64,000 nucleotides of DNA from Anaeramoeba ignava BMAN. Lineage: Eukaryota > Protista > Anaeramoebae. The stretch lies in the NCBI GenBank assembly GCA_028826165.1, contig JAPDFW010000122.1, forward strand, positions 62,001-126,000. Reading direction: 5' to 3'. How positions within the stretch are numbered: the stretch's first letter is position 1; every line of letters begins with the position of its first letter. Positions 1-59,245 of the stretch are shown here, piece by piece. Both the position numbers and the translations under genes were made by a program. The notes beneath the pieces are model-generated. The model did not search any database. It was not told where the DNA came from and saw nothing but the letters and a program-made list of their open reading frames with translations.

Positions 1-3000
1 TCCCAAATTAAAAACAGAAGAAGATTTAAAATTATTTGAAGAAACAATTCAACAATTTAAAAATGAATTTGAACAAAAAAAAAAGAAAGAAATTGAAGAA
101 TTTAAAGAATTTATTCAACAAAACAAAATTGAAAATGAAAATGAAAATTTAGAAAAAATTATTCAAGAAATAAAAAATAGAATTAAATTCCAAAAAAATA
201 AATATTTAGAAAAAATTGAAAAGAAAATTCAAGAAATTGAAATTAAAAATGAAAATTTAAATGAAATTGAAAAAATAATTCAAGATTTTAACAATGAAAT
301 TGAAAAAAGAAAAAATGAATTTTATTCAAAAATTGATCAAGAAATCAAAAATATTCAAAATGAAATTGAAAATCAAAAATTAAAAATAGAAATTCTTCAA
401 TCAACAGAAAAAACAATAAATTTTTTACAAGATCTTTCAAATTCAATTCAACAACAAGATAAAAGTAAATCAAACTCAAAAACAAAACAAAAGAAAATTT
501 AATTTAATTTAATTTAATTTAATTTAATATTTTTAAACCAAAAACAAAAGAAATAATTGAAATTGATATTCCTTTTATTGCCGAATGTATGAATAAATTT
601 CCAAATAATGAAATTATTCAAGAAAATGGATGTTTTATTTTACAAAAATTTGCAAAAGAAAATGAAGGTAAAATATTTATTTTTTTGAAACAATTTTTGA
701 ATAACAATATTAAAAATAATAATTGAAATTTTAAAGATAATCAAATAGAAATAAAAAAATTTAATGGATTTGAACCTCTTATAAATGTAATGAATAATTT
801 CCCAAATAATGAAGATATTCAAATAAAAGCATCTGAAGCTTTATTAATATTTTCAGGAGGATTAAAAAGTAAATTAATTTCTTTTTTTAACAAAATCATA
901 AATCAAAAATCATAAATCAAAAAAAAAAATGAATTATTTGCAAATTTAAATCTTTTTCTTTTTCTTCTTTCACAAAACAAAAAGGAGAAGAAATAGAAAA
1001 TCGGAAATTACAAGGAATTGAAATTTCTAAATTAAATGGAATTAAAACAATTATTAATACAATCAATAATTATCCAAATAATCAAATTATTCAAGAAAAA
1101 TCTATTTCAATTTTAATTAATATTGCAATTAATTCAGGTAAAAAAATTTATAAGAAAAAACAAATATTTATTTCCATAATTTTTACATTTCCAATTCTCA
1201 TCAAAAATTTTAAAAAATTTAATTTATAAAATGAAATGAGAAAATTAATTTCAATTTCAATTTCAAATTTATTTCCCAAAAAAAATATCAAAAAAATAGA
1301 AAACAGAATTGAAATTAGAAATTTAAAAGGAATTGAACCTATTATTAAATCAATGAATAATTTCCCAAATAATCAAGATATTCAAGAAAATGGATGTGGA
1401 GCTTTATTGAATATTGCTGTTGATAATGGTAAATAAAAAATAATCAAAAATCCAAATATTTTAATCAATTATTTATTATTAATTATTAATCAAAAAAAAT
1501 ATTTAATCAATTTCAATTTATTTCCAAAAAAATCCAAAAAAAATTAATTTCAATTTCAATTTATTTTCCAAAAAAAAATATCAAAAAAAATAGAAAACCA
1601 AATTGAAATTAGAAATTTAAAAGGAATTGAACCTATTATTAAATCAATGAATAATTTCCCAAATAATAAAGATATTCAAGAAAAAGGATGTTGGGCTTTA
1701 TCGAATATTGCTGTTGATAATGGTAAATAAAAAATAATCAAAAATCCAAATATTTTAATCAATTATTTATTATTAATTATTAATCAAAAAAAATATTTAA
1801 TTAATTTCGATTTATTTCCAAAAAAATCCAAAACAAATTAATTTCAATTTCAATTTCAATTTCAATTTCAATTTCAATTTATTTCCCAAAAAAATAGAAA
1901 ACCAAATTGAAATTAGAAATTTAAAAGGAATTGAACCTATTATTAAATCAATGAATAATTTCCCAAATAATCAAGATATTCAAGAAAAAGGATGTGGAGC
2001 TTTATTGAATATTGCTGTTGATAATGGTAAATAAAAATCAAAAATCAAATAAAATTATAAATTAAAATATTTTAATCAATTATTTATTATTAATTATTAA
2101 TCAAAAAAAATATTTAATCAATTTCAATTTATTTCCAAAAAAATCCAAAAAAAATTAATCCAATTTCAATTTCAAATTTATTTCCCAAAAAAAATATCAA
2201 ATAAAAATAGAAAACCGAATTGAAATTAAAAATTTAAAAGGAATTGAACCTATTATTAAATCAATGAATAATTTCCCAAATAATCAAGATATTCAAAAAC
2301 AAGGATGTTGGGCTTTATTGAATATTGCTGTTAATAATGGTAATTAAAAAATAATCAAAAATCCAAATATTTTAATCAATTATTTATTATTAATTATTAA
2401 TCAAAAAAATATTTAATTAATTTCAATTTATTTCCAAAAATCCAAAAAAAAATTGATTTCAATTTCAATTTATTTCCAAAAAAATAGAAAACAAAATTGA
2501 AATTAGAAATTTAAAAGGAATTGAACCTATTATTAAATCAATGAATAATTTCCCAAATAATCAAGATATTCAAGAAAAAGGATGTTGGGCTTTATCGAAT
2601 ATTGCTGTTGATAATGGTAAATAAAAAATAATCAAAAATCCAAATATTTTAATCAATTATTTATTATTAATTATTAATCAAAAAAATATTTAATTAATTT
2701 CAATTTATTTCCAAAAAAATCCAAAAAAATTAATTTCAATTTCAATTTCAATTTCAATTTATTTCCAAATAAATAGAAAACCAAATTGAAATTAGAAATT
2801 TAAAAGGAATTAAACCTATTATTAAATCAATGAATAATTTCCCAAATAATCAAGATATTCAAAAACAAGGATGTTGGGCTTTAAATAATCTGTCTTTTAA
2901 TGATGGTAATTAAAAAATAATCAAAAATCCAAATATTTTAATCAATTATTTATTATTAATTATTAATCAAAAAATATTTAATCAATTTCAATTTATTTCC

Positions 3001-4096
3001 AAAAAAATCCAAAAAAATTAATTTCAATTTCAATTTCAATTTCAATTTATTTTCAAAAAAATAGAAAACAATATTGAAATTAGAAATTTAAAAGGAATTA
3101 AACCTATTATTAAATCAATGAATAATTTCCCAAATAATCAAGATATTCAAAAACAAGGATGTGGAGCTTTATTGAATATTGCTGTTGATAATGGTAATTA
3201 AAAATCAAAAATCAAATAAAATTATAAATTAAAATATTTTAATCAATTATTTATTATTAATTATTAATCAAAAAAATATTTAATTAATTTCAATTTATTT
3301 CCAAAAAAATCCAAAAAAATTAATTTCAATTTCAATTTCAATTTCAATTTATTTCCAAATAAATAGAAAACCAAATTGAAATTAGAAATTTAAAAGGAAT
3401 TAAACCTATTATTAAATCAATGAATAATTTCCCAAATAATCAAGATATTCAAAAAAAAGGATGTTGGGCTTTAAAGAATCTATCTTTTAATGATGGTAAA
3501 TAAAAAATAATCAAAAATCTAAATATTTTAATTAATTATTTATTATTAATTATTAATCAAAAAAATATTTAATTAATTTCAATTTATTTCCAAAAAAATC
3601 CAAAAAAAAATTAATTTCAATTTCAATTTCAATTTCAATTTCAATTTCAATTTATTTCCCAAAAAAATAGAAAACAAAATTGAAATTAGAAATTTAAAAG
3701 GAATTGAACCTATTATTAAATCAATGAATAATTTCCCAAATAATAAAGATATTCAAAAACAAGGATGTTGGGCTTTATCGAATATTGCTGCTAATGATAA
3801 TGGTAAATAAAAATAAAAAACAAATAAAATTATAAATTAAAATATTTTAATCAATTATTTACTATTAATTATTAATCAAAAAAATATTTAATTAATTTCA
3901 ATTTATTTCCAAAAAAATTCAAAAAATTAATTTCAATTTCAATTTATTTTCCAAAAAAATAGAAAACAAAATTGAAATTAGAAATTTAAAAGGAATTGAA
4001 TCTATTATTAATGCAATGAATAATTTCCCAAAGAATCAAATTATTCAACGAAAAGGGAAATATGCTTTAAAAAATTCAATTGAATCTTTTAAATAA
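1..4096 (+). CDS. Armadillo-repeat protein with N-terminal coiled coil, 5' partial, multi-exon
   Basis: Manual splicing. Coiled-coil exon <1-464, then ARM exons 551-667, 737-868, ~985/997-1137, 1300-1428, 1594-1722, 1898-2026, 2211-2339, 2488-2616, 2777-2905, 3065-3193, 3367-3495, 3671-3802, 3963-4096 (TAA). All introns are phase-1 GT-AG. Unit ENQIEIRNLKGIEPIIKSMNNFPNNQDIQEKGCWALSNIAVDN is an ARM consensus (helix-3 W-x-x-x-N). Confidence 0.85.
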
Positions 4097-4098
4097 TG
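1138..4098 (+). repeat. Tandem exon+intron repeat, 10 units of about 280-315 bp, one ARM repeat per exon
   Basis: Near-identical 129-nt exons (one 132 nt) separated by near-identical introns (gtaaataaaaaataatcaaaaatcc...atttcc(a)ntag). Confidence 0.95.
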
Positions 4099-4464
4099 GT
4101 AAATAAAAATAAAAAAAAATCAAAAAATTATTTTCTGATTTTTCAATTATTTTTTATTAATCAAAAATGGAATAAATTAATGATTTAATTTAATATTTTT
4201 CATTTCAAAAATAAAAAGAAAATAATCAATCAAAAATAAAAGATTGAATGGAAAGAAATCAATCAATCAAAAATCAATGAATCAATTCCCAAATAATCAA
4301 GATATTCAAGAAAAGGAAAATGGACTTTAGAAAAATTACAAAACAATTAAAATCAAATCAATTTTCATTTTTAAAATTTAAAATTTTTTGATTTCTTTTC
4401 TTTTTAAAATCAAATTCAAAAAAAAAAAAATTAAAAATTATTTAATAATTTTTCAAATATTTTT

Positions 4465-5029
4465 CAAAATCAATCAATTAATTCAATCAATTAATCAATC
4501 AATCAATCAAATCAATCAATTCAATCAATCAATCAATTAATAATTGTAATAATCAATCACCAAATCAATCAATGCTTAAAATAAATTTTAAAATCAATCT
4601 TAAAAATCAGAAAATCAATCAATCAATTTAAAAAACCACCAATCAATCAATTTTAAAAAATTTTAAAATCAATCTTAAAATAAATTTTAAAATCAAATTT
4701 AAAAAAAATCAATCAATCAATCAATTTTAAAATCAATCAATCAATCAATCAAAAATAAAAATCCAATCATTAACACTAAAATTCAAAATAAATAAAATCA
4801 ATTTAAAAAATCAATTAAAATCAATTTTAAAAATTACCTAAAATAAAATAAAATAAATTACCAAAACCAATCAATCAATTGGTAATTAATAATCAACTAA
4901 TCAATAATCAATAAATCCATCAATCAATCAATCAATCAATCAATCAAATTAAATCAAATCAAATCAATCAATCAATCAAAAAATAAAATCAAAAAATCAA
5001 AATAAATCAATCAATCTTAAAATCAAATG

Positions 5030-5098
<69 letters not shown>

Positions 5099-5155
5099 CA
5101 ATCAATTTAAAATCAATCAATCAATCTTAAAATCAATCTTTAAAATCAATCTTAA
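4465..5155. repeat. Degenerate (AATC)n microsatellite
   Basis: Runs of aatcaatcaatc between two convergent genes. Confidence 0.85.
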
Positions 5156-5450: not shown

Positions 5451-7966
5451 TTATTTATAATCATGAATGGAAAAATGAGCTTTAAATAAAGTGGCAGTTT
5501 TTTGCTCTTTTCTTTGTTCTTTGAGTCTTTTTCTTTCTTCTTGTCTTCTTTTCCAAGCTTCATCATCCATTTGTTTTGGTTCATTTTGTTCTATTTGCAT
5601 ATTTTGATTTTGATTTTGATTTTGAATTTGATTTTGAATTTGATTTTCTTGTTTTGGTAATTGTGAATCATTTTTGAATTGGAATTCTTTTGCTTGTTTT
5701 TGTTTGAGTTCTTGTTTAATTTGGTCTTCTTTTGTTTTTTTTTGGAGTTCTGACCAAAGATCGTCTTCTTCGTTATCTTGGTTGTTTTCGACTTTTTGCT
5801 CATCAATTTCGATTGATTTGGGATCGTTGAAAAGAACTGGAGATTCGACTAAAGTTTTCCACCCGTCAGTATTGACAACACGGGGGATTATTTTATGTTC
5901 TGTTTGACCAAAAGCTTCGACAAAAAGTGAATGTGATTGGATTTCCTCATTGGGTTTAATTTCTAGTGAATTTTTTTCAAAATGTTCTTGTGGAGAAGTT
6001 TCGGGAGCTTCATCGCCAAGTATACTATCAATTACTTGGGATGGATTTTCTTTGGTTTGGAAATACATTTCCACACAGCGGTTTAATAAACACCATGTTT
6101 TTTGATTTAATGAATCAATGTGAATATTGATTTCTTGTGTTGATTCTTGGTTGGTTTGATTGTGTATTTGGTAGCTGTCTCCCATTCCTTCCTTGAGGAT
6201 TTCGGAAATGAGATCTTCTGGCATATTTTCCAGTTGCGAAAGGGTTGAATTTTTTTCCTCGTTTGTTAAATCGCGAATTTGCAGATTTTTGATTAATTTT
6301 TGGGTAATTTTGCGAATTCTTCGTGATTCTTTCCATGCAATTCGACGCTCATTTGTTGTAGATTTCGAGCGGGTTATGATTTGTTTTCTGTTTGATTTTT
6401 CTTCCTGTGTTTTTTGTTGTTTGGTTGCTTTTTGGTTAAATAATGTGTCCAAAGTCTGTTTTAATTGAATTAGTGATGGATTGCTTGAAATTTCGTGAAA
6501 AAGTTGTTTTTGGCCTTGGTTTGGTGTTTGGGAATATAATTGCTTGGTGATTTGAAGCTGGTATGATAGGTATAGTAATGATGATGTTAGTTGTTGGATT
6601 AGCATCAATGATTCTTGAAGTTTTTGCTTTGTTTGTAATTGTTTTTCTTTTTGTTTTTCGATTTCTTTTTGTTTTTCTATTTCCATTTGTTTTTGTTTTT
6701 TTTCTTTTTGCTTTTGTCTTTTTAGTTTCTGTTTTTGTTTCTGTTGTTTTTGTTTTTGTTTTTGTTTCTGTTTTTGTTTGTGTTTTTGTTTGCGTTTTTG
6801 TTTGTGTTTTTGTTTGTGTTTTTGCGTGATTTTTCTTTTTCTTTTTCTTTTTCTTTTTCTTTTTCTAAAGAAGTTATTTCATAATTGCCAAGATTTTCTA
6901 TTTTAATTTCTTCAGTATTTGAGTTATCTTGGAGTTGTTTTGATTTAAAATTTCTGGTTTGTTTAGAAATTGATGTTTCTGAAGGGTTGTTGATAATTAA
7001 ATTATTATTTTGAATTTGATTTAAATTATTATTTTGAATTTGATTTAAATTATTATTTTGAATTTGATTTAAATTATTTTGATTTAAATTATTTTGATTT
7101 TGAATTTGATTTTGAATTTGAATTTGATTTTGATTTTGGATTTGATTTTGATTTTGGATTTGATTTTGATTTTGATTTTGATTTTGATTTTGATTTTGAT
7201 TTTGATTTAAATTTTCAATTTCAATTTCATCTTCACTTTCATCTTCATCTTCACTTTCATCTTCATCTTCATCTTCACTTTCATCTTCATCATCTTCATC
7301 ATCTTCATCATCTTCATCATCTTCATCTTGATTTTCAATAAATTTTTCAATTTCATCCTCAAGATTTCCATTTTCATTTTCATTTTCAAATTTAATTTCA
7401 TTTTCATTTTCATTTTCATTTTCATTTTCAAATTTAATTTCATTTTGATTTAAATTTAAATTTAAATTTTGAAATGGAAATTGATTCTGATTCAATTTTA
7501 ATTTATATTCACTTATTTTTTTCTTCAAATCTGGTAAAAGTTTTTCAAATTGTGTTTGTAATTGAACAGCACAATTATAACCCCAAGAATTTCTTTCATT
7601 AAAATATTTTGCATTAGAAATTATCAAGTGAAAATCAGCAGAAAATTCTTTAATTTTTTTATATTGATTTGCTTTTGTTTTGTTTCTCATTGTTTGTAAA
7701 TCCATTGGATTTTTTATAACAGAATAATATCTTGGAATTTTATATTTTTTCACATCAACAGCTTCTCTAAAAGGTTCTGCACAATCATATTTCTTCAAAC
7801 GTTGTAATAGTTTTAAACATTCTTTAATTTTTTTTTGTTCAATTTTTTGTTCTTTTGTTTGTATGTTTTTTTCTTTTGTTTTCATTTTTTTTAAATCTTG
7901 ATTTATTAAAAAATCATTTGTTGTTTCTTTTTCGTTTATTTTGTTTTGGTTTGTTTCATTTTGCAT
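5451..7966 (-). CDS. Bromodomain + extra-terminal (BET/GTE family) protein; one apparent frameshift near 6820
   Basis: ORF 6722-7966 carries a bromodomain (AEPFREAVD...YYSVIKNPMDL...NAKYFN). ORF 5451-6686 carries an ET domain (LTNEEKNSTLSQLENM...INIHIDSLNQKTW). Adding one base in the homopolymer at ~6819-6823 joins them (...SRKKHKQKHKQ...). Confidence 0.8.
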
Positions 7967-8359: not shown

Positions 8360-11169
8360 ATGTCAGATTTAGATGAATATTATGAATCTGAACAAGATCT
8401 TGAAGAAAAAGTTGAAAAACTTGCAGAATTAATAAAAAAATCTCAATATATTGTAGTTTTTACAGGAGCAGGAATATCAACAGCAGCAGGAATTCCAGAT
8501 TATAGAGGACCAAGAGGTAAACAAATTATATACAAAATTATTTATAAAATTATTTATAAAATTATTTATAAAATTAAATATAAAATTAAATATAAAATTA
8601 TATATAAAATTATTTATAAAATTATTTATAAAATTATTTATAAAATTATTTATAAAATTATTTATAAAATTATTTATAAAATTAAATATAAAATTAAATA
8701 TAAAATTATTTATAAAATTATTTATAAAATTAAATATAAAATTAAATATAAAATTATTTATAAAATTATTTATAAAATTAAATATAAAATTATTTATAAA
8801 ATTATTTATAAAATTATTTATAAAATTAAATATAAAATTATTTATAAAATTATTTATAAAATTATTTATAAAATTAAATATAAAATTATTTATAAAATTA
8901 TTTATAAAATTATTTATAAAATTATTTATAAAATTATTTATAAAATTAAATATAAAATTATTTATAAAATTATTTATAAAATTAAATATAAAATTAAATA
9001 TAAAATTAAATATAAAATTATTTATTAAATTAAATATAAAATTATTTATTAAATTATTTATAAAATTAAAAATAAAATTAATTATAAAATTATTTATAAA
9101 ATTATTTATAAAATTATTTATAAAATTATTTATAAAATTAAATATAAAATTAAATATAAAATTATATATAAAATTATTTATAAAGTTATTTATAAAATTA
9201 ATTATAAAATTATTTATTAAATTAATTATAAAATTATTTATAAAATTATTTATAAAATTAAATATAAAATTATTTATAAAATTATATATAAAATTATTTA
9301 TAAAATTATTTATAAAATTAAATATAAAATTAAATATAAAATTATTTATAAAATTATTTATAAAATTATTTATAAAATTATTTATAAAATTAAATATAAA
9401 ATTAAATATAAAATTAGATATAAAATTATTTATAAAATTATATAAAAATTATTTATAAAATTAATTATAAAATTATTTATAAAATTATTTTATAAAATTA
9501 TTTATTAAATTAATTATAAAATTAATTATAAAATTATAAAATTATTTATAAAATTATTTATAAAATTATTTATAAAATTATTTATAAAATTATAAATAAA
9601 ATTATTAATAAAATTATTTATAAAATTATTTATAAAATTATTTATAAAATTATTATAAAATTATTTATAAAATTAAATATAAAATTAAATATAAAATTAT
9701 TTATAAAATTATTTTATAAAATTATTTATAAAATTATTTATAAAATTATTTATAAAATTATTTATTAAAATTATTTATAAAATTAAATTATTTATAAAAT
9801 TATTTATAAAATTATTTATAAAATTATTTATAAAATTATTTATAAAATTATTTATAAAATTATTTATAAAATTATTTATAAAATTATTAATAAAATTATT
9901 AATAAAATTATTTATAAAATTATTTATAAAATTAATTATAAAATTAAATATAAAATTAAATATAAAATTAATTATAAAATTAAATATAAAAATTATTTAT
10001 AAAATTATTTATAAAATTATTTATAAAATTATTTATTAAATTAAATATAAAATTAAATATAAAATTATTTTATAAAATTAAAATTTATAAAATTATTTAT
10101 TAAATTATTTATAAAATTATTTATAAAATTATTTATAAAATTATTTATAAAATTATTTATAAAATTATTTATAAAATTATTTATAAAATTATTTATAAAA
10201 TTATTTATAAAATTATTTATAAAATTATTTATAAAATTATTTATAAAATTATTTATAAAATTAAATATAAAATTAAATATAAAATTAATTATAAAATTAA
10301 ATATAAAATTATTTATAAAATTAATTATAAAATTATTTATAAAATTATTTATAAAATTATTTATAAAATTATTTATAAAATTAAATATAAAATTAAATAT
10401 AAAATTATTTATAAAATTATTTATTAAAATTATTTATTAAAATTAAATATTAAATTATTTTATTATTTTTTAAGGTGTTTGGACTTGTATTAATAAAGGA
10501 GAAGAACCACCAATTTCTAAACTTTGGGATGAAATTCAACCAACTTTAACACATATGGCAATTAAAAAATTAGTAGATTATGATATAGTGAAATATATAA
10601 TATCACAAAACACGGATAATTTACATTTACAAAGTGGAATACCAATTTCCAAAATAAGTGAAATGCATGGAAACGGAAAAAAAGAATATTGTTCAAAATG
10701 CAAAAAGATTTTCTACAGATCTTTTCCTGTTCGAGATCCAGACGCAAGTAAACATAAAACAGGTAGATTTTGTGAAGATTGCGGAGGTGAACTTTTTGAT
10801 TCTATTGTTGATTTTGGAGATAAACTTCCACAACTTGATCTAAATAGAGCTTTTGAACATTCTAAAAAAGCAGATCTTGTTATTGTTCTTGGATCTTCTC
10901 TTCAAGTTTCTCCTACTTCTGAAATGCCTCTTTATACTCTTGAAAATGACAAAAATCCTGGAAATTTAGTTATTGTTAATTTACAAGTTACTCCAAAAGA
11001 TCAATTTGCTTCTCTTAAAATTTTTGCTGAATCTGATATTGTTATGAAATTATTAATGAAAAAACTTGGAATTCATTTTGAATTATGGGATGAATTAGAA
11101 GAACAAAATAAACAAAATCAAACAAATGAATCAAATGAATCAAATGAAACAAATGAAAATCAAAAATAA
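8360..11169 (+). CDS. NAD-dependent deacylase, class IV sirtuin (SIRT6/SIRT7-like)
   Basis: Exons 8360-8516 and 10475-11169. Motifs [44 protein letters not shown], two CxxC zinc pairs, LGSSLQV, IVNLQ. Confidence 0.93.
8517..10474 (+). repeat. 1958-nt sirtuin intron filled by 12-bp satellite (AAAATTATTTAT and variants)
   Basis: GT at 8517 and AG at 10473-10474 join RGPR-G-VWT in frame; the interior is tandem 12-mer. Confidence 0.93.
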
Positions 11170-11309: not shown

Positions 11310-14300
11310 TTATTTTTTTGATAATGAAATACTTGGTGTATTTTTTGGAGAAATTTTTGGAACATTTGGATTTAAATTTGGATTTTGATTTGGGTTTAAA
11401 TTTGGATTTGGATATAGATTTTGATATGGATTTGGATATGGATTTTGATATGGATTTGGATTTAAATTTTGAAAGAAATGTGGAAAATGGTTCAAATGTG
11501 AAAAAAATGGATTTGGTGGAAAATTATTTTGGTTCATAAAATTTTGTTGTGGGAATTCATCTTTCCTTAAAAATGAATCATTTTTTTGAAATTCATTCTC
11601 ATAAGAATTTGTATTATGAGTAGGGTTAAAAGATGGAGATAAATAGTTATGATCAAAATTTGGATTAGGAGAGGGAATGACTAAATATAAAAGAATTTAT
11701 AAATATTTTTTTTATAAATATAAAAGAATTTATAAATATTTTTTTATAAATATTTTTTTTATAAATATTTTTTTTACCTAAAGGATTAGCTTCTTGGGAT
11801 TGATTTCCTTTCATTAGTATATTTAATTGTGGATCAAAGAATAAATTTGGATCATTAAAATGTGAGAAATTTTGATATGGAAATGATGGATTTAAATTTT
11901 GATTTTGATTTTGATTTTGATTTTGATTTTGATTTTGAATTGGATTTAAATTTTGAATTTGATTTTGATTTAAATTTTGAATTGGATTTTGATTTGGATT
12001 TTGATTTAAATTTTGATTTTGGTTTTGAAATTGGTTTTGATTTAAATTTTGATTTTGATTTTGATTTTGATTTTGATTTTGATTTAAATTTTGGTTTTGA
12101 AATTGGTTTTGATTTAAATTTTGATTTTGATTTTGATTTAAATTTTGGTTTTGATTTAAATTTTGATTTTGATTTTGATTTAAATTTTGATTTTGAAATT
12201 GATTTAAATTTTGATTTTGATTTTGATTTAAATTTTGGTTTTGAAATTGGTTTTGATTTAAATTTTGAATTTGATTTTGATTTAAATTTTGATTTTGATT
12301 TAAATTTTGATTTTGAAATTGGTTTTGATTTAAATTTTGATTTGGATTTTGATTTAAATTTTGATTTTGTATTTGTGAATAAAATTGATTCCTAGGTTGT
12401 GTTGTTTTTTGAGGAGAATAATTGTTTGTTATATTCATTTGATTTGAAAATTGATTATTCAAATTATTCAAATTATTATTATTATTAAAAATTTTTCTAT
12501 TTTTTTCATCATCATTTCTAGTTATTATCATTGGATTTTTTTCTTCATTTTTTTTCGAAATTTCTTGGTTTTTCATTTCTGGTTTTTTTTGAATTTGTGA
12601 TTTTAAATTTTGTGATTGATTTCTATGATCTCCAAATTGAAAATGTTGTTGTGATTTTGTGATTAAATGTGAAGAAAAAACAACTCCAGTTGATTTTTCT
12701 GTTTGAGAAGGTATTTCGTTTTCTTGTTCAAGAATTTTTTCTAATTCTTCTTGAGTAATTGTTTTAGTTATTTGATATTTTTGTTTTGATTCTTTTGTTT
12801 TGATTCTTTATGTTTTGGTTCTTTATGTTTTGATTCTTTATGTTTTGATTCTTTATGTTTTGATTCTTTATGTTTTGATTCTTTATGTTTTGGTTCATTA
12901 TCAAGTTCATTTAAATTCATTTTTTCTATCATTTCAACTGAAATTGTTTCATCTTCATTTATTGGTTCTTTTTGTTTTTTAGTTTCTGGAATTATTTTTG
13001 TTGTTTTTTCTTTTTTTTTCCATATTCTTGTTCTTTGTGGATTATTTTTTTGAGAAAAATTTTGATTAAAATTATTTTGGTTTTGGTTTTGGTTTTGTTT
13101 TCGAATCCATCTTAGTTTTGGTTTAGATTGGAATTGATTTTGATTTTGATTTAGATTAAAATTATTTTGATTTTTTTGAATTTCTTGATTTTGATTTTTT
13201 TGATTTTCTTGAATTTGATTTTGATTTTGATTTTGATTTTGATTTTTTTGAATTTCTTGATTTTGATTTTGATTTTGATTTTTTTGAATTTCTTGATTTT
13301 GGTTTTGGTTTTTCTTCTTTTTCTTCTTTCCATTTTTTTGAGTTGATTTTGATTTTGGTTTTGATTTTGAATTTGATTTTGAATTTGATTTTGAATTTGA
13401 ATTTAAACTTTTCTTTATTTCTTCATTTTTTTGAGGTTCTTTATTTTTTCTTTGAAATCTTGGTTGATTTTCAATTTCTTTTTTTTCATTAAATTCTAAA
13501 CTTTGATCTAAAATGTTTGATTTATTTTTCTTCTTTTTTTTATTTCCAATTTTTTTCCACCTTGTAGTTTCTTTATCTTGACCTAAATTATTTATAAAAT
13601 TAAAAATAAAATTAATTATAAAATTAAATATTAAATTATTAATAAAATTATTTATAAAATTATTTATAAAATTATTTATAAAATTATTTATAAAATTAAA
13701 TATAAAATTATTTATAAAATTATTTATAAAATTAATTATAAAATTATTTATAAAATTAATTATAAAATTAATTATAAAATTAATTATAAAATTATTTATA
13801 AAATTAAATATAAAATTAAAAATAAAATTATTAATAAAATTATTTATAAAATTATTTATAAAATTATTTATAAAATTATTTATAAAATTAATTATAAAAT
13901 TATTTATAAAATTATTTATAAAATTAATTATAAAATTATTTATAAAATTAATTATAAAATTATTTATAAAATTAATTATAAAATTATTTATAAAATTATT
14001 TATAAAATTATTTATAAAATTATTTATAAAATTATTTATAAAATTATTTATAAAATTATTTATAAAATTATTTATAAAATTAAATATAAAATTATTTATA
14101 AAATTATTTATAAAATTATTTATAAAATTATTTATAAAATTATTTATAAAATTATTTATAAAATTATTTATAAAATTATTTATAAAATTATTTATAAAAT
14201 TATTTATAAAATTATTTATAAAATTATTTATAAAATTATTTATAAAATTATTTTATAAAAATAAATTAAATTAAATATAAAATTATTTATAAAATTAATT

Positions 14301-16704
14301 ATAAAATTATTTATAAAATTATTTATAAAATTATTTATAAAATTATTTATAAAATTAAATATAAAATTATTTATAAAATTATTTATAAAATTAATTATAA
14401 AATTATTATAAAATTAATTATAAAATTATTTATAAAATTAAATATAAAATTATTTATAAAATTAATTTATAAAATTATTTATAAAATTAAATATAAAATT
14501 ATTTATAAAATTAAATTTATAAAATTATTTATAAAATTATTTATAAAATTATTTATAAAAATTATTTTATAAAATTAATTATAAAATTATTTATAAAATT
14601 ATTTATAAAATTAAATATAAATTTATTTTAAAATTAAATTTATAAAATTATTTAAAAATTATTTATAAAATTATTTATAAAATTATTTATATAAAATTAT
14701 TTATAAAATTATTTATAAAATTATTTATAAAATTAATTATAAAATTATTTATAAAATTATTTTATAAAATTATTTATAAAATTATTTATAAAATTATTTA
14801 TAAAATTATTTATAAAATTATTTATAAAATTAAATATAAAAATTATTTTATAAAATTATTTATAAAATTATTTATAAAATTATTTATAAAATTATTTATA
14901 AAATTATTTATAAAATTATTTATAAAATTATTTATAAAATTATTTATAAAATTAATTATAAAATTATTTTATAAAATTATTTATAAAATTATTTATAAAA
15001 TTATTTATAAAATTATTTATAAAATTATTTATAAAATTATTTATAAAATTATTTATAAAATTATTTATAAAATTATTTTATAAAATTATTTATAAAATTA
15101 TTTATTAAAATTATTTATAAAATTATTTATAAAATTATTTATAAAATTATTTATAAAATTATTTATAAAATTATTTTATAAAATTATTTATAAAATTATT
15201 TATAAAAATTATTTATAAAATTATTTATAAAATTATTTATAAAATTATTTATAAAATTATTTATAAAATTATTTATAAAATTATTTATAAAATTATTTAT
15301 AAAATTATTTATAAAATTATTTATAAAATTATTTATAAAATTATTTTATAAAATTATTTATAAAATTATTTATAAAATTATTTATAAAATTATTTATAAA
15401 ATTATTTATAAAATTATTTATAAAATTATTTATAAAATTATTTATAAAATTATTTATAAAATTATTTATTAAATTATTTATAAAATTATTTATAAAATTA
15501 TTTATAAAATTATTTATAAAATTAAATATAAAATTATTAATAAAATTATTTATAAAATTATTTATAAAATTATTTATAAAATTATTTATAAAATTATTTA
15601 TAAAATTATTTATAAAATTATTTATAAAATTATTTATAAAATTATTTATAAAATTATTTATAAAATTATTTATAAAATTAATTATAAAATTATTTATAAA
15701 ATTATTAATAAAATTAATTATAAAATTATTTATAAAATTATTTATAAAATTATTTATAAAATTATTTATAAAATTAATTATAAAATTATTTATTAAAATT
15801 ATTTATAAAATTAATTTATAAAATTATTTATAAAATTATTTATAAAATTAAATATTAAATTATTTATAAAATTGAATATAAAATTAAATATTAAATTATT
15901 TATAAAATTATTTATAAAATTATATATAAAATTAATTATAAAATTATTTATTAAATTATTTATAAAATTAAATATAAAATTAAATATAAAATTAAATATA
16001 AAATTATTTATAAAATTATTTATAAAATTATATATAAAATTATATATTAAAATTATTTATAAAATTATTTATTAAATTATATAAAATTATTTATAAAATT
16101 ATTTATAAAATTAAATATAAAATTATTTATAAAATTAAATATAAAATTATTTATAAAATTAATTATAAAATTATTTATAAAATTAATTATAAAATTATTT
16201 ATAAAATTATTTATAAAATTATTTATAAAATTATTTATAAAATTATTTATAAAATTATTTATAAAATTATTTATAAAATTAAATATTAAATTATTTATAA
16301 AATTAAATATAAAATTATTAATAAAATTATTTATAAAATTATTTATAAAATTAATTATAAAATTAATTATAAATTTATTTATAAAATTATTTATAAAATT
16401 ATTTATAAAATTATTAATAAAATTAATTATAAAATTATTTATAAAATTATTTATAAAATTATTTATAAAATTATTTATAAAATTATTTATAAAATTATTT
16501 ATAAAATTATTTATAAAATTATTTATAAAATTATTTATAAAATTATAAGTTTTTTTTACATAATTTTTGTATTGTTAAATCTAAATCAAATCGATTTTCA
16601 GAAAGTATTTGAAAAGCTAAATCTTGTTTATTAGGAAATAATTCAATCAACTTCTCCATTTTTGATCTATGGATTTCTGGAATTTTATTTAAATTTTGAT
16701 TCAT
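11310..16704 (-). CDS. CUE/UBA-like domain protein with Q/N-rich low-complexity body (UBAP2/GIP1/Def1-like architecture); apparent frameshift near 12795
   Basis: Exons 16704-16560 (MNQNLNKIPEIHRSKMEKLIELFPNKQDLAFQILSENRFDLDLTIQKL), 13582-11778 (CQDKETTRWKKIGNKKKK...), 11680-11310. A one-base deletion in the run at 12793-12796 breaks a KHKES repeat. The 3' end is uncertain. Confidence 0.65.
13583..16559 (-). repeat. 2977-nt intron filled by the same 12-bp satellite family
   Basis: Minus-strand GT at 16559 and AG at 13584-13583; interior is tandem AAAATTATTTAT on the + strand. Confidence 0.9.
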
Positions 16705-29573: not shown

Positions 29574-29599
29574 ATTTCAAAATCAGATTTTCAACAGAA

Positions 29600-31380
29600 A
29601 TTAAATAATTTTAATATATAATTTTAATAATAAATTTAATAATAAATTAAATAATAAATTTAATAATAATTTTAATAATAATTTTAATAATAATTTTAAT
29701 AATAAATTTAATAATAATTTTAATAATAATTTTAATAATAATTTTAATAATAATTTTAATAATAAATTTAATAATAATTTTAATAATAATTTTAATAATA
29801 ATTTTAATAATAATTTTAATAATAATTTTTAATAATAAATTTTAATAATAATTTTAATAATAAATTTAATAATAATTTTAATAATAATTTTAATAATAAT
29901 TTTAATAATAATTTTAATAATAATTTTAATAATAAATTTAATAATAATTTTAATAATAATTTTAATAATAATTTTAATAATAATTTTAATAATAATTTTA
30001 ATAATAATTTTAATTTTAATAATAATTTTAATAATAATTTTAATAATAATTTTAATAATAATTTTAATAATTTAATAATAATTTTAATAATAATTTTAAT
30101 AATAATTTTAATAATAAATTTTAATAATAATTTTTAATAATAATTTTAATAATAATTTTAATAATAATTTTAATAATAAATTTAATAATAAATTTTAATA
30201 ATAAATTTAATAATAAATTTAATAATAAATTTAATAATAATTTTTTAATAATTTTAATAATAAATTTAATAATAATTTTAATAATAATTTTAATAATAAT
30301 AATTTTAATAATAATTTTAATAATAATTTTATTAATAAATTTAATAATAAATTTAATAATAATTTTAATAATAAATTTAATAATAATTTTAATAATAATT
30401 TTAATAATAATTTTAATAATTATAATAATAATTTTTAATAATAATTTTAATAATAATTTTAATAATAATTTTAATAATAATTTTAATAATAATTTTTAAT
30501 AATAATTATAAATTTAATAATAATTTTAATAATAATTTTAATAATAATTTTAATAATTAATAATAATTTTAATAATAATTTTAATAAATTTTATAATAAT
30601 AATAATAATAATTTTAATAATAATTTTAATAATAAATTTAATAATAATTTTAATAATTATAATAATAAATTTAATAATAATTTTAATAATAATTTTAATA
30701 ATAATAATTTTAATAATAATTTTAATAATAATTTTAATAATAAATTTTAATAATAAATTTAATAATAAATTTTAATAATAATTTTAATAATAATTTTTAA
30801 TAATAATTTTAATAATAAATTTAATAATAAATTTAATAATAAATTTTAATAATAAATTTAATAATAAATTTAATAATAATTTTAATAATAAATTTAATAA
30901 TAATTTTAATAATAAATTTTAATAATAAATTTTAATAATAAATTTAATAATAATTTTAATAATAATTTTAATAATAAATTTAATAATAATAAATTTAATA
31001 ATAATTTTAATAATAATTTTAATAATAATTTTAATAATAATTTAATAATAATTTTAAATAATAATTTTAATAATAATTTTAATAATAATTTTTAATAATA
31101 AATTTAATAATAATTTTAATAATAAATTTAATAATAATTTTAATAATAATTTTAATAATAATTTTAATAATAATTTTAATAATAATTTTAATAATAAAAT
31201 TTTATAAATAATTTTAATAATAATTTTAATAATAATTTTAATAATAATTTTAATAATAATTTTAATAATAATTTTAATAATAATTTTAATAATAATTTTA
31301 ATAATAATTTTAATAATAATTTTAATAATAATTTTAATAATAAATTTAATAATAATTTTAATAATAATTTTAATAATAAA
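29600..31380. repeat. Intergenic 12-bp satellite (AATAATAATTTT)n
   Basis: Tandem A/T-only 12-mer starting just after the Mago stop codon. Confidence 0.95.
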
Positions 31381-31476
31381 TAGAAAAAGATTTTGTTTTA
31401 AAATTTTTGATTTTCAAAATTTATTTTTTCATTTTTTTTCTTTTTAAAATCATTTTTTTTATAATAAGAAAAACAA

Positions 31477-55093: not shown

Positions 55094-58000
55094 ATGTCAC
55101 AATCAGATTTTAATCCACACACAGCTCTTGGTTCACATCGATGGCAAGCTTTCCTTTTATCTTTATTATTCTTATTTTTTGGTTTAATTTCTTTATCAAT
55201 ACTTTTTTATCAATTCATTACAAGGTATTTTTAAAAAGATTCCGAATAAAAAGAAGAAAAAGAAAAAAAATTTTTTTTCTCTTTGATTTAATAAGATTAT
55301 ATTATAAATAAATTTATAAATAATTTTACAAATAATTTTACAAATAATTTTACAAATAATTTTACAAATAATTTTATAAATAATTTTATAAATAATTTTA
55401 TAAATAATTTTATAAATAATTTTATAAATAATTTTATAAATAATTTTACAAATAATTTTATAAATAATTTTATAAATAATTTTATAAATAATTTTATAAA
55501 TAATTTTATAAATAATTTTATAAATAATTTTATAAATAATTTTATATAATTTTATAAATAATTTTATAAATAAATTTAATTTAATTTTAAATAATTTTAT
55601 AAATAATTTTATAAATAATTTTATAAAATAATTTTATAAATAATTTTATAAATAATTTTATAAATAATTTTTATAAATAATTTTATAAATAATTTTATAA
55701 ATAATTTTATAAATAATTTTATAAATAATTTTATAAATAATTTTATAAATAATTTTACAAATAATTTTATAAATAATTTTATAAATAATTTTATAAATAA
55801 TTTTATAAATAATTTTATAAATAATTTTATAAATAATTTTATAAATAATTTTATAAATAATTTTATAAATAATTTTATAAATAATTTTATAAATAATTTT
55901 ATAAATAATTTTTATATTTAATTTTATAATTAATTTTATAATTAATATTTATTTAAAATAATAATTTTATAATTAATTATTTATAAATAATTTTATAAAT
56001 AATTTTATAAATAATTTTATAAATAATTTTATAAATAATTTTATAAATAATTTTATTAATAATTTTATAAATAATTTTATAAATAATTTTATAAATAATT
56101 TTATAAATAAATTTTATAAATAATTTTATAAATAATTTTATAAATAATTTTATAAATAATTTTATAAATAATTTTATAAATATTTTATGTTAATTTTATA
56201 AATAATTTTATAAATAATTTTATAAATAATTTTATAAATAATTTTATAAATAATTTTATAAATAATTTTATATTTAATTTAATAAATAATTTTATATTTA
56301 ATTTTATAAAATAATTTTATATTTAATTTTACAAATAATTTTATAAATAATTTTTAAAATAATTTTATAAAATAATTTTATAAATAATTTTATAAATAAT
56401 TTTATAAATAATTTTATAAATAATTTTTATAAATAATTTTTATAATTAATTTTTATAAATAATTTTATAAAATAATTTGTATAAATAATTTTATAAATAA
56501 TTTTATATTTAATTTAAGATTATATTATAAATAAATTTATAAATAATTTTATAAATAATTTTATAAATAATTTTATAAATAATTTTATAAATAATTTTAT
56601 AATTAATTTTATAATTAATTTTATAATTAATTTTATATATAATTTTATAAATAATTTTATAAATAATTTTATTTTATAAATAATTTTATAAATAATTTTA
56701 TAAATAATTTAATAAATAATTTTATAAATAATTTAATAAATAATTTAATAATTTTATAATTAATTTTATAAATAATTTTTATAAATAATTTTATAAATAA
56801 TTTTTATAAATAATTTTATAAATAATTTTATAAATAATTTTATAAATAATTTTATATATATAATTTTATAAATAATTTTATAAATAATTTTATATTTAAT
56901 TTTATAAATAATTTTATAAATAATTTTATAATTAATTTAATAAATAATTTTATAAATAATTTTATAAATAAATAAATAATAATTTTATAAATAATTTTAT
57001 AATTAATTTTATAAATAATTTTATAAATAATTTTATAAATAATTTTATAATTAATTTTATAAATAATTTTTAAATAATTTTATAAATAATTTTATAAATA
57101 ATTTTATAAATAATTTTATAAATAATTTTATATAAATAATTTTATAAATAATTTTATAAATAATTTTATAAAATAATTTTATAAATAATTTTATAAATAA
57201 TTTTTATAAATAATTTTATAAAAATAATTTTTTATAAATAATTTTATAAAAATAATTTTATAAATAATTTTATAAATTTTTATAAATAATTTTATAAATA
57301 ATTTTATAAATAATTTTATAAATAATTTTATATTTAATTTTATAAATAATTTTATAAAATAATTTTATAAAATAATTTTATAAATAATTTTATAAATAAT
57401 TTTATAAATAATTTTATAAATAATTTTATAAATAATTTTATAAATAATTTTATAAAATAATTTTATAAATAATTTTATAAATAATTTTATAAATAATTTA
57501 ATAATTTTATAAATAATTTTATAAATAATTTTATAAATAATTTATATTTAATTTAATAAATAATTTTATAAATAATTTTATAATTAATTTTAATAAATAA
57601 TTTTATAAATAATTTTATAAATAATTTTATAAAATAATTTTATAAATAATTTTATAAATAATTTTATAAATAATTTTATAAATAATTTTATAAATAATTT
57701 AATAAATAATTTTATAAATAATTTAATAAATAATTTTATAAATAATTTTTATTTAATTTAATAAATAATTTTATAAATAATTTTTATATAATTTTATAAT
57801 TAATTTTTAATTTAATAAATAATTTTATAATTTTATAAAATAATTTTATAAATAATTTTATAAATAATTTTATAAATAATTTAATAAATAATTTTTGTAA
57901 ATAATATTATAAATAATTTAATAAATAATTTTATAAATAATTTTATAAATAATTTTTATAAATAATTTTATAAATAATTTTTATAATTAATTTTATAAAT

Positions 58001-59245
58001 AATTTTATAAATAATTTAATAAATAATTTTATAAATAATTTTATAAATAATTTTATAAATAATTTTATAAATAATTTTATAAATAATTTTATAAATAATT
58101 TTATAAATAATTTTATAAATAATTTTATAAATAATTTTATAAATAATTTTATAAATAATTTTATAAATAATTTTATAAATAATTTTATAAATAATTTTAT
58201 AAATAATTTTATATTTAATTTTATAAATAATTTTATATTTAATTTTATAATTAATTTTATAATTAATTTTATAAATAATTTTATATTTAATTTTATAATT
58301 AATTTTGTTTAAATTTAAAAGGAAAAAATATCGATATAATGAAACTGGCGTATTTTATTTTGCAACTTTGATTTTGTCAACTATTTTCCTTCTATGGGAA
58401 TGGATTATTAGTTTCTTTACACTTCCTTGGAGTTATGATGCAATAGCTTATCTTTTTCATCATTACATCCCTTTATTTTTACAATTTGGAATGTAAAATT
58501 ATATTTAAAAATTTATAAATTAAATTAAAATTTATATCGAATTTTTAGGTTTTCAATCTTCGTTTTATTCATTTTGAAGATTTATTACTTCATCCAAAAC
58601 AAACAAAACAAATTTAAAATTTTCTTTCGAATTTATCTTCTTATAGTTTTCTTACTTTTTTGTATAATGTATGCAGTTTGTGTGATTCTTGATTCTTATG
58701 AAGGAAGATCATATCAAAAAACATTCAACGAATTATCAGCCATTTTAATCGGAATTTTTGTTATTATTTTTACAATAATCTCAATTAAAATTGGAATTGT
58801 TCTCAAAGATTTTGGAACTGTTCAACATAAAACAAGTCGGAAAATTAAAATTTTTTCCGTTTTCTTATTTATATATTTGTCAGTTTTTATTTTTCGGATG
58901 TTTTGGTTGATTTTTGATTTATCAGATGCTAATACACTTTATGACAACATGAAAAATTGGGAAAATGATGGCGATTCAAGATATTATACTGCTAATCTCA
59001 TTCTTCGCGGATTTCTTGAATTAGTTCCAACAATTATTATTGTAACTATTTTCCATTTTGGAGTTATGAAAAGAAAAAAAATATCAGAGTTACTTGATTC
59101 AGAAAAAAATTCTTTAGTCGCTCCAAAAGTTACAATTCAATCTCGTCATTCAAATTCTTCAAGTCTTTTATGTTGTGGTTGTTGTCATAAAAAATCTGTT
59201 TGGAAAGAATCAAATAATGAGTTTCTTGATGAAGATCTTTTTTAA
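55094..59245 (+). CDS. Seven-TM protein, GPR137/TM7SF1 (TOM1)-like
   Basis: Exons 55094-55224, 58322-58492, 58549-59245. About 7 hydrophobic helices, IPLFLQFGMFS, ELVPT, Cys-rich tail CCGCC. Confidence 0.72.
55225..58321 (+). repeat. 3097-nt intron filled by 12-bp satellite (ATAAATAATTTT)n
   Basis: Reverse complement of the sirtuin-intron unit; GT at 55225 and AG at 58320-58321 keep the frame. Confidence 0.9.

Follow-up and report, generated by a model that had tools for sequence, protein, structure and literature searches.

A family of armadillo-repeat exon cassettes in Anaeramoeba ignava varies along its predicted peptide-binding groove

What kind of gene repeats one exon nine times over, keeps the introns between the copies nearly alike and still varies the encoded protein at a few chosen codons? 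This question is raised by the start of a 64,000-nucleotide stretch of the Anaeramoeba ignava BMAN genome (contig JAPDFW010000122.1, here C123, positions 62001-126000; hereafter the window), where a forward-strand gene carries a tandem array of exons that each encode one armadillo (ARM) repeat. The DNA upstream of the window (locus L003, from C123:54001) was also examined. The original prediction, made from the letters of the window, proposed a modular ARM receptor diversified at its ligand-binding helix, possibly for recognition of symbionts or pathogens. Our analysis favors, with a probability of roughly 0.6, a germline family of ARM cassettes diversified along the groove, in which the array would act as the substrate-specificity module of a Cul3-type ubiquitin ligase. 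The evolutionary signature is well supported by comparison of the sequences, and the function is a proposal.

The exon structure of the array agreed base for base with what had been predicted. Window positions 1300-4096 hold nine internal exons and a terminal exon, all in phase 1 and with one ARM repeat per exon, and the translated units were identical to those originally read. Eight exons of 129 nt, E1 to E8, lie at 1300-1428, 1594-1722, 1898-2026, 2211-2339, 2488-2616 (E5, which served as search query), 2777-2905, 3065-3193 and 3367-3495. The ninth, E9 (3671-3802), has 132 nt with an extra codon in the loop between helix 3 and helix 1. E6 and E8 share a helix-3 subtype, NLSFN, and this subtype recurs in several arrays. 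The exons were placed by reading the sequence, supplemented by Pfam searches. The terminal exon (3963-4096, TAA stop at 4094-4096) encodes a C-terminal cap repeat in which GK replaces GC and helix 3 is different; a donor-like GT persists just past it at 4099-4100. Paralogue arrays likewise end in homologous cap exons. Beyond the stop codon lies a degenerate relic unit (4238-4315, 29 bits against the unit profile) consisting of helix 2 and the start of helix 3, without splice sites.

The introns of the array are 148-184 nt long, follow the GT..AG rule throughout and are 85-98% identical to one another, differing mainly in the length of an (AATTTC)n tract. Tandem Repeats Finder reported exon and intron together as a single array at 1289-4056 with a period of 289, 9.4 copies, 86% matches and a score of 3694. 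Each exon has the form 2 + 3n + 1 nt, which gives phase 1 on both sides. Since the exons are symmetric in phase and the introns (about 160 nt) are near-identical, loss, gain or exchange of a whole unit stays in frame. The G+C content of the window is 18.7%, and A+T accounts for 80.65% of the A. ignava BMAN genome as published (PMC11550330).

By profile comparison, the window modules are ARM-fold repeats. In the four internal exons tested, the match to Pfam Arm (PF00514) was in register, covered positions 4-40 of the 41 in the profile and scored 17.5-19.4 bits for E1, E2 and E6 and 24.4 bits for E9; at a cut-off of 20.6 bits, only E9 passes singly. A paralogue array matched yeast Vac8 at E 4e-23. 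Against the PDB, the unit profile found the LRRK2 ARM domain best (E 8e-13), together with engineered and designed ARM proteins, Vac8 and importin-alpha. Folding was done on the array of an annotated paralogue, P0155 (residues 548-847), while the window gene was searched exon by exon. The AlphaFold model of P0155 reached a predicted local distance difference test (pLDDT) score of 95.4 and a predicted template-modeling (pTM) score of 0.91, with three helices per unit. In unit numbering, helix 1 runs from position 42 to position 7 of the next unit, helix 2 from 11 to 20 and helix 3 from 25 to 38. Foldseek placed this model closest to designed ARM repeat proteins (TM 0.7-0.8) and to ODAD2/ARMC4 (TM 0.85-0.87).

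A genome-wide search for paralogous arrays had been suggested, and it revealed a large family of hundreds of modules that the original reading had not recognized. A genome search with the 42-residue unit gave 1,451 first-look candidates, and all 150 that were scored had E < 1e-15, on more than 25 contigs. The family therefore numbers at least 150 such exons and perhaps about 1,400. Contigs C69, C33, C46 and C93 carry copies of the window's first 600 nt at 94-96% identity, and numerous further copies reach 65-92%. Among the paralogues that are 94-96% identical upstream, the arrays count 9, 23, 9, at least 4 and at least 5 units, the last two ending at contig ends. More distant arrays contain about 5-14 units, with array-typical intron lengths of about 135, 160, 230 or 270 nt. 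In the window array and 10 others, each repeat occupies one exon of equal length and symmetric phase. Two paralogues that are 96% identical upstream, L004 (C69:1-7000) and L005 (C33:1-7000), run off their contig ends inside the ARM array, and L004 additionally contains the tail of a second array. On C77, two paralogous BTB-ARM genes, L009 (C77:273500-283499) and L010 (C77:251500-261499), stand in inverted orientation about 28 kb apart; they have 10-11 units each, introns of about 270 nt, Asn at unit position 6 and helix-3 words in common.

The cassettes are attached to more than one type of protein. Arrays also terminate RING-kinase-SH3 proteins such as P0005 and P0155, with at least 35 paralogous N-termini. 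Their loci comprise L016 (C68:277179-279126) and at least 35 others, including copies on C71, C110, C82, C61, C62 and C108 and a cluster on C128, where several copies carry an in-frame TAA within the kinase part. P0005 is the A. ignava protein KAJ5075045.1 and maps to C68 at 100% identity, and one sister protein bears the UniRef name RING-type E3. Cassettes are found as well in the ARM-RCC1-BTB proteins P0007, P0027 and P0028, and P0001-P0003 are paralogues without an amplified array. Among the proteins looked up, every named one that reached 45% identity with the unit came from A. ignava. Matches in other organisms were ordinary ARM proteins of at most 44% identity, and the distant ones included U-box-kinase-ARM proteins of other protists. 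Scanning JGI metagenome contigs with the unit profile gave no relative, and no A. flamelloides protein was among those looked up in a search that was not exhaustive. As far as the collections searched show, the family appears specific to A. ignava.

Variation between units is confined to a few positions. In the window array, codons 2, 6, 12, 25, 29, 30, 33, 36 and 38-42 vary; synonymous variants are limited to AGA/CGA and CTG/CTA, in agreement with the original reading. Array statistics were drawn from 98 clean units of 11 arrays or loci. Only codons 2, 29, 30, 33, 36 and 40, which take 6-10 residues each, had an amino-acid entropy of 1.95-2.6 bits across these units; positions 25, 26 and 37 varied moderately, and the remaining positions were nearly fixed. 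The six hypervariable positions formed 84 distinct six-residue words in the 98 units, while the 30-position scaffold was identical in 27 units and Asn37 was retained in 81. Within helix 3, variability peaked at 100-105 degrees per residue, as expected for an alpha helix, so the variable residues form one stripe on this helix. In the P0155 model, position 40 falls in the loop between helix 3 and helix 1, and position 2 adjoins it at the start of helix 1.

The concave groove of importin-alpha and of designed ARM proteins is lined by helix 3, and in both it is Asn37 that binds the peptide backbone. Residues 29, 30 and 33 of the 42-residue module of designed ARM binders are the pocket residues that are re-selected when specificity is changed (PMC11228518), and they coincide with hypervariable positions here. 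The primer N-E-Q-I-L-Q-E-A-L-W-A-L of that study sets the register by placing Trp at 33, and this coincides with the unit numbering used for the window modules. The hypervariable residues line the predicted peptide-binding groove.

To judge selection, the introns between the same exons were taken as the neutral standard. Synonymous sites were dropped as a yardstick because they are few and biased at 81% A+T and because multi-step codon paths inflate the synonymous rate at the hypervariable codons. Nucleotide diversity at the six codons was 0.21-0.40, against 0.02-0.12 in the introns and 0.015-0.076 in the scaffold. The six codons exceeded the introns in 11/11 arrays, by a ratio of 2.6-12.2 with a median of 4.6 (sign test, p = 5e-4). 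Circular site selection was avoided by choosing codons from the window alone, and in the 10 other arrays these codons still showed a diversity of 0.12-0.29 compared with 0.016-0.076 for the remaining codons. Together with the helical periodicity, this excess bears out the claim that variation is focused on one face of helix 3. Sites that were neutral both to selection and to homogenization could not outrun the introns, which argues that diversity at the six positions is either favored or protected from homogenization. This evidence for selection consists of diversity ratios; it is less than a formal test with codon models, and recombination would confound such a test in any case.

A recent duplication illustrates the same pattern. 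In paralogue L006, a block of two units has been duplicated, and the introns of the two copies differ at about 9 of 303 positions. The 255 scaffold nucleotides show 0 changes (7.6 expected, P = 5e-4), and codon 33 differs by two bases, GGA vs TGG. GGA and TGG both occur often among the units of the family, so the change at codon 33 is most simply traced to a short tract converted from another unit, an origin that we infer from the sequences. Intron lineages are also intermixed: in five close paralogues, the nearest neighbor of an intron lay in the same array for 25/45, compared with 12.8 expected by chance. This observation suggests that units predate the gene duplications or move between loci. 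Templated hypermutation like that of diversity-generating retroelements was considered as a source of the variants and set aside, because the variants are whole-codon alternatives common to units and the germline copies are already diverse.

Taken together, diversity-favoring selection on the groove and germline duplication of units appear well supported by these comparisons, and short-tract gene conversion between units is the inferred companion process. Arrays would grow and shrink in the germline through unequal crossing-over. Units and paralogues would swap short tracts by gene conversion, keeping introns and scaffold alike, and selection would favor or protect differences at the groove-facing positions. 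The groove that binds the peptide backbone would thereby stay constant, while the row of side-chain pockets along it would differ from array to array. The family looks like a germline library of binding specificities.

The array makes up the C-terminal half of an intact 14-exon gene of 1,378 residues (1,379 codons with the stop), in which all 13 introns are phase 1. The gene encodes, in order, a BTB domain, a coiled coil, three divergent ARM repeats, the nine near-identical ARM modules and the cap repeat. Its N-terminal domain had been expected upstream of the window, and exon 1 indeed contains the BTB domain and the coiled coil. This exon of 812 codons starts at C123:60028, 1,972 nt before the window, in an open frame at L003:6019-8499 with its ATG at L003:6028. 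Its 3' part occupies window positions 1-464, followed by a donor GT at 465-466 in phase 1. It encodes low-complexity runs of His/Ser/Lys and Asn/Gln, the BTB domain (Pfam PF00651, aa 279-375, 37.8 bits with a cut-off of 20.5, E 2.4e-9) and the long coiled coil. The closest solved structure to the BTB region was the BTB of SPOP with the helices that follow it, at a modest E 2.4e-6. A Pfam search of exon 1 gave no BACK match, and no signal-peptide-like start was found at the N-terminus encoded by this exon.

Three exons, all phase 1-1, connect exon 1 to the array. Exon A (551-667), placed by sequence and frames, encodes the first divergent ARM-like repeat in the region of the N-terminal cap; it matched ARM_LRRK2 (PF23744) at E 2e-4, below the cut-off, and is conserved in paralogues L004-L007. 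The second divergent repeat is encoded by exon B (737-868, 132 nt), which was supported by sequence, frames and paralogues and scored 48 bits against the profile built from E1-E9. Exon C (985-1137, 153 nt) is predicted to encode the third, its acceptor at 983-984 having been chosen by frame.

What such a protein might do was approached through its domains. The lack of a signal-like start, together with the BTB domain and the coiled coil, makes an intracellular substrate receptor of a cullin ligase likelier than a surface receptor. The proposal of a modular ARM receptor therefore held in part: unit gain, unit loss and block duplication in the germline agree with it, and a receptor at the cell surface is less likely than an intracellular adaptor. 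The likeliest role, judged from domain content, would be that of a cytosolic cullin-3 substrate adaptor. A SPOP-like BTB domain would recruit a Cul3-like cullin, and the ARM array would provide the specificity module of a cullin-RING ubiquitin ligase substrate receptor. The genome encodes at least eight cullin loci. One open reading frame (L021:1759-3192, on C58) is closest to human Cullin-3, with E 4e-119 ahead of 2e-101 for Cul4B, a ranking by similarity only. Loci on C71, C74 and C64 were considered as Cul3 and set aside as Cul1/2-like or Cul4-like. The array also gave weak profile matches to ARM_ARMC5, ZER1-like and ZYG11B. A ubiquitin-ligase module joined to a variable ARM array is common to the BTB and RING architectures, and this fits a substrate receptor whose specificity comes from a row of pockets. 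Its targets could be endogenous, viral, symbiont or prey proteins. Nothing points specifically to the symbionts or pathogens of the original prediction, and recognition of either is conjecture.

The same gene could instead have an endogenous, non-degradative role, as a scaffold or tether like Vac8 or ODAD2 or as a regulator of Rab/TBC proteins, in which the BTB domain and coiled coil only oligomerize the protein. No degradation receptor is among the closest natural relatives of the array with solved structures, namely Vac8, ODAD2/ARMC4 and the LRRK2 ARM domain; a long coiled coil lies between BTB and ARM; and membrane-trafficking families are greatly expanded in A. ignava (PMC11550330). However, the same cassette arrays occur on RING-kinase-SH3 and RCC1-BTB proteins, where the common theme is E3-type domains. 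The BTB domain is nearest to that of the Cul3 adaptor SPOP, the weak matches to ZER1 and ZYG11B concern ARM domains of Cul2 receptors, and fast diversification is unusual for housekeeping scaffolds. We consider such a role unlikely, but it is the explanation that competes best with a ligase adaptor.

A different possibility is that diversity arises within the cell, through alternative splicing or skipping of the symmetric exons or through somatic rearrangement of units. The design of the gene would allow it, since all 13 introns share phase 1, the units and their splice sites are near-identical and any skipping stays in frame. The annotated protein P0005 (C68) also lacks seven residues (E-N-x-I-E-I-R) at about 670-680, at the start of one unit; this gap may reflect an alternative acceptor within the cassette exon, truncation of the unit or a mistake in annotation. 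Splicing at the phase-1 introns that bound repeats is confirmed for one distant paralogue only. Over 450 residues, the transcriptome open reading frame P0050 is identical to this BTB-ARM paralogue on C74, and it crosses two of the paralogue's GT-AG phase-1 introns at repeat boundaries; the tail of P0050 departs from the C74 locus, so P0050 is probably a chimera. A query with three units of a paralogue for transcript fragments found no short proteins. Lamprey variable lymphocyte receptor genes, which lack parts in the germline and are completed somatically with flanking cassettes, resemble the present arrays in using repeat modules with variable concave-face residues as a recognition repertoire. 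In contrast, the window gene is complete in the germline and open across its 14 exons. Hundreds of fixed genomic modules already hold the diversity, making a somatic step unnecessary, and the splice sites form no pattern of weak and strong. Diversification within the cell is therefore a poor contender compared with diversity held in the germline.

A third explanation dispenses with selection for diversity altogether. It holds that a young amplification left unconstrained surface sites drifting neutrally, or that the differences are old ones that escaped homogenization. The pooled ratio of nonsynonymous to synonymous differences (pN/pS) in the window array is only about 1.7 on few changes, and pN/pS of the scaffold is about 1, as if homogenization rather than purifying selection explained its identity. 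Drift would nevertheless have to account for a 2.6-12 fold excess over intron diversity in 11/11 arrays, for the recurrence of the same positions with helical periodicity in independent arrays and for the L006 block duplicate, whose coding difference is at codon 33 only. The variable sites are moreover rich in Trp, Tyr, Arg and Gly codons, unlike the product of a mutation bias toward 81% A+T. A neutral origin is already largely refuted and is very improbable. An assembly or polishing artefact in the number, order or sequence of units is hardly credible: although the close paralogues on C69 and C33 stop at contig ends inside arrays, so that repeats do break the assembly, the window array of about 2.8 kb lies inside a 165-kb contig with its units open, in frame and with intact splice sites, eleven arrays share the same grammar, annotated paralogues carry the same units, and the differences are codon-wise instead of random errors.

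Several points weigh against a groove-diversified cassette family that feeds a Cul3-type ligase. The selection case rests on introns, which may be homogenized more efficiently than short exon patches, and in 3/11 arrays scaffold diversity was not below intron diversity. The structural mapping depends on a paralogue array and on helical periodicity, not on coordinates of the window protein itself. Cul3 binding is deduced from the domain family only, many BTB proteins do not bind cullins, and the match to SPOP is modest (E 2e-6). No protein for the window gene was found in the annotated protein set, so the gene appears to be unannotated; of five sequencing runs found, none is recorded as RNA, and expression of the gene is presumed. 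Some units contain stops or frameshifts (L005, strand-oriented 6813-6941; L011, 3908-4301), suggesting that part of the family is decaying by birth and death.

A bolder picture can be drawn from the same elements, and we offer it as a speculation with the odds clearly against it. Hundreds of peptide readers resembling designed ARM repeat proteins, mounted on BTB/Cul3 and RING ligases, might form a germline repertoire renewed by cassette duplication and micro-conversion. Such a repertoire might serve intracellular, degradation-based surveillance of proteins from viruses, prey or sulfate-reducing symbionts, with in-frame exon skipping as a possible addition. The host is a deep-branching anaerobic protist with bacterial symbionts, many foreign genes and many virus-derived inteins, which makes degradation-based defense or partner control a testable idea.

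The nearest described system is found in the brown alga Ectocarpus (Zambounis et al. 2012, PMC3341825; Front Plant Sci 2024, PMC11378527). Its ROCO families with leucine-rich repeats (LRR) and NB-ARC families with tetratricopeptide repeats (TPR) devote each exon to a single repeat, shuffle these exons intensely, contain inactivated relic exons and show diversifying selection. Fixed-length symmetric exons of one repeat each, gene birth and death, relic exons and diversified exposed residues are shared with the A. ignava family. The repeat is here an ARM repeat (43 aa, 129 nt) and there an LRR (24 aa, 72 nt) or a TPR, and the partners are BTB, RING-kinase-SH3 or RCC1-BTB instead of ROC-COR or NB-ARC. 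The present host is an anaerobic amoeba and not a brown alga, its introns are near-identical, and reversed intronic units were not seen.

The proposed link to ubiquitin ligases has its own parallels. In human ARMC5 and plant ARIA/ABAP1 (both ARM-BTB), the plant PUB U-box-ARM proteins and ZYG11B/ZER1, the ARM array is the part of a ubiquitin ligase that recognizes the substrate. These proteins differ in forming single-copy or small families of diverged repeats, with no cassette exons or hypervariable modules, and in their domain order, since the BTB domain is N-terminal here. Expanded and positively selected E3 substrate adaptors were reportedly described by Thomas in Genome Research in 2006. 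The BTB-MATH families of nematodes and grasses and the F-box families are large, lineage-specific sets of positively selected E3 adaptors (PMC4091423, PMC8120010). As in the cassette family, fast change is confined to the substrate-binding domain while the cullin-docking domain is conserved, and intracellular defense against foreign proteins has been proposed for them. They rely on a single MATH or FBA fold altered by point mutation, whereas the exon-cassette array varies in length, order and pockets.

Closest in architecture are the designed ARM repeat proteins (PDB 5AEI, 5MFC, 5MFM), which consist of an N-cap, identical internal modules of 42 aa and a C-cap and were the best structural matches. 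They are man-made and share about 20% sequence identity with the natural arrays, for which peptide binding is a prediction. The LRRK2 ARM domain (PF23744) has the motif FP-N--Q--GC-AL at the turn between helix 2 and helix 3 in common with the window modules. LRRK2, in contrast, carries a few diverged repeats in a ROCO kinase, and its kinship is no closer than a shared ARM subtype implies.

A full-text literature search combining armadillo repeats, exon shuffling and diversifying selection returned nothing relevant, and the main text of the Anaeramoeba symbiosome genome paper leaves armadillo, BTB and ankyrin families unmentioned. If our reading is true, ARM repeats would join LRR and TPR as a third class of repeat whose one-per-exon cassettes assemble a recognition repertoire that evolves fast, and no earlier repertoire of this sort would have been coupled to ubiquitin-ligase domains in place of NB-ARC or ROCO switches. 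For protein engineering, the family would be a natural counterpart of designed ARM binders: its scaffold is fixed, Asn37 is conserved, and dozens of naturally selected pocket combinations, at positions that overlap the pockets varied in the laboratory, could be mined for novel specificities of peptide pockets.

The surroundings of the gene showed further features. Its 5' neighbor (L003 1-3300, C123:54001-57300) is a long open frame for the second-largest subunit of RNA polymerase, broken by an insert dissimilar to its flanks, which fits the inteins described for this organism (PMC10710043). Directly 3' of the gene, window positions 4468-5130 form an extended field of imperfect (AATC)n/(CAAT)n microsatellite repeats. 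Farther downstream, stretches of 0.3-2.3 kb free of G and C lie within window positions 8534-10473, 13584-16548, 29598-31382 and 55450-58306; they consist of A/T units of about 12 bp such as AAAATTATTTAT, with a G+C fraction of 0.001 over 2 kb.

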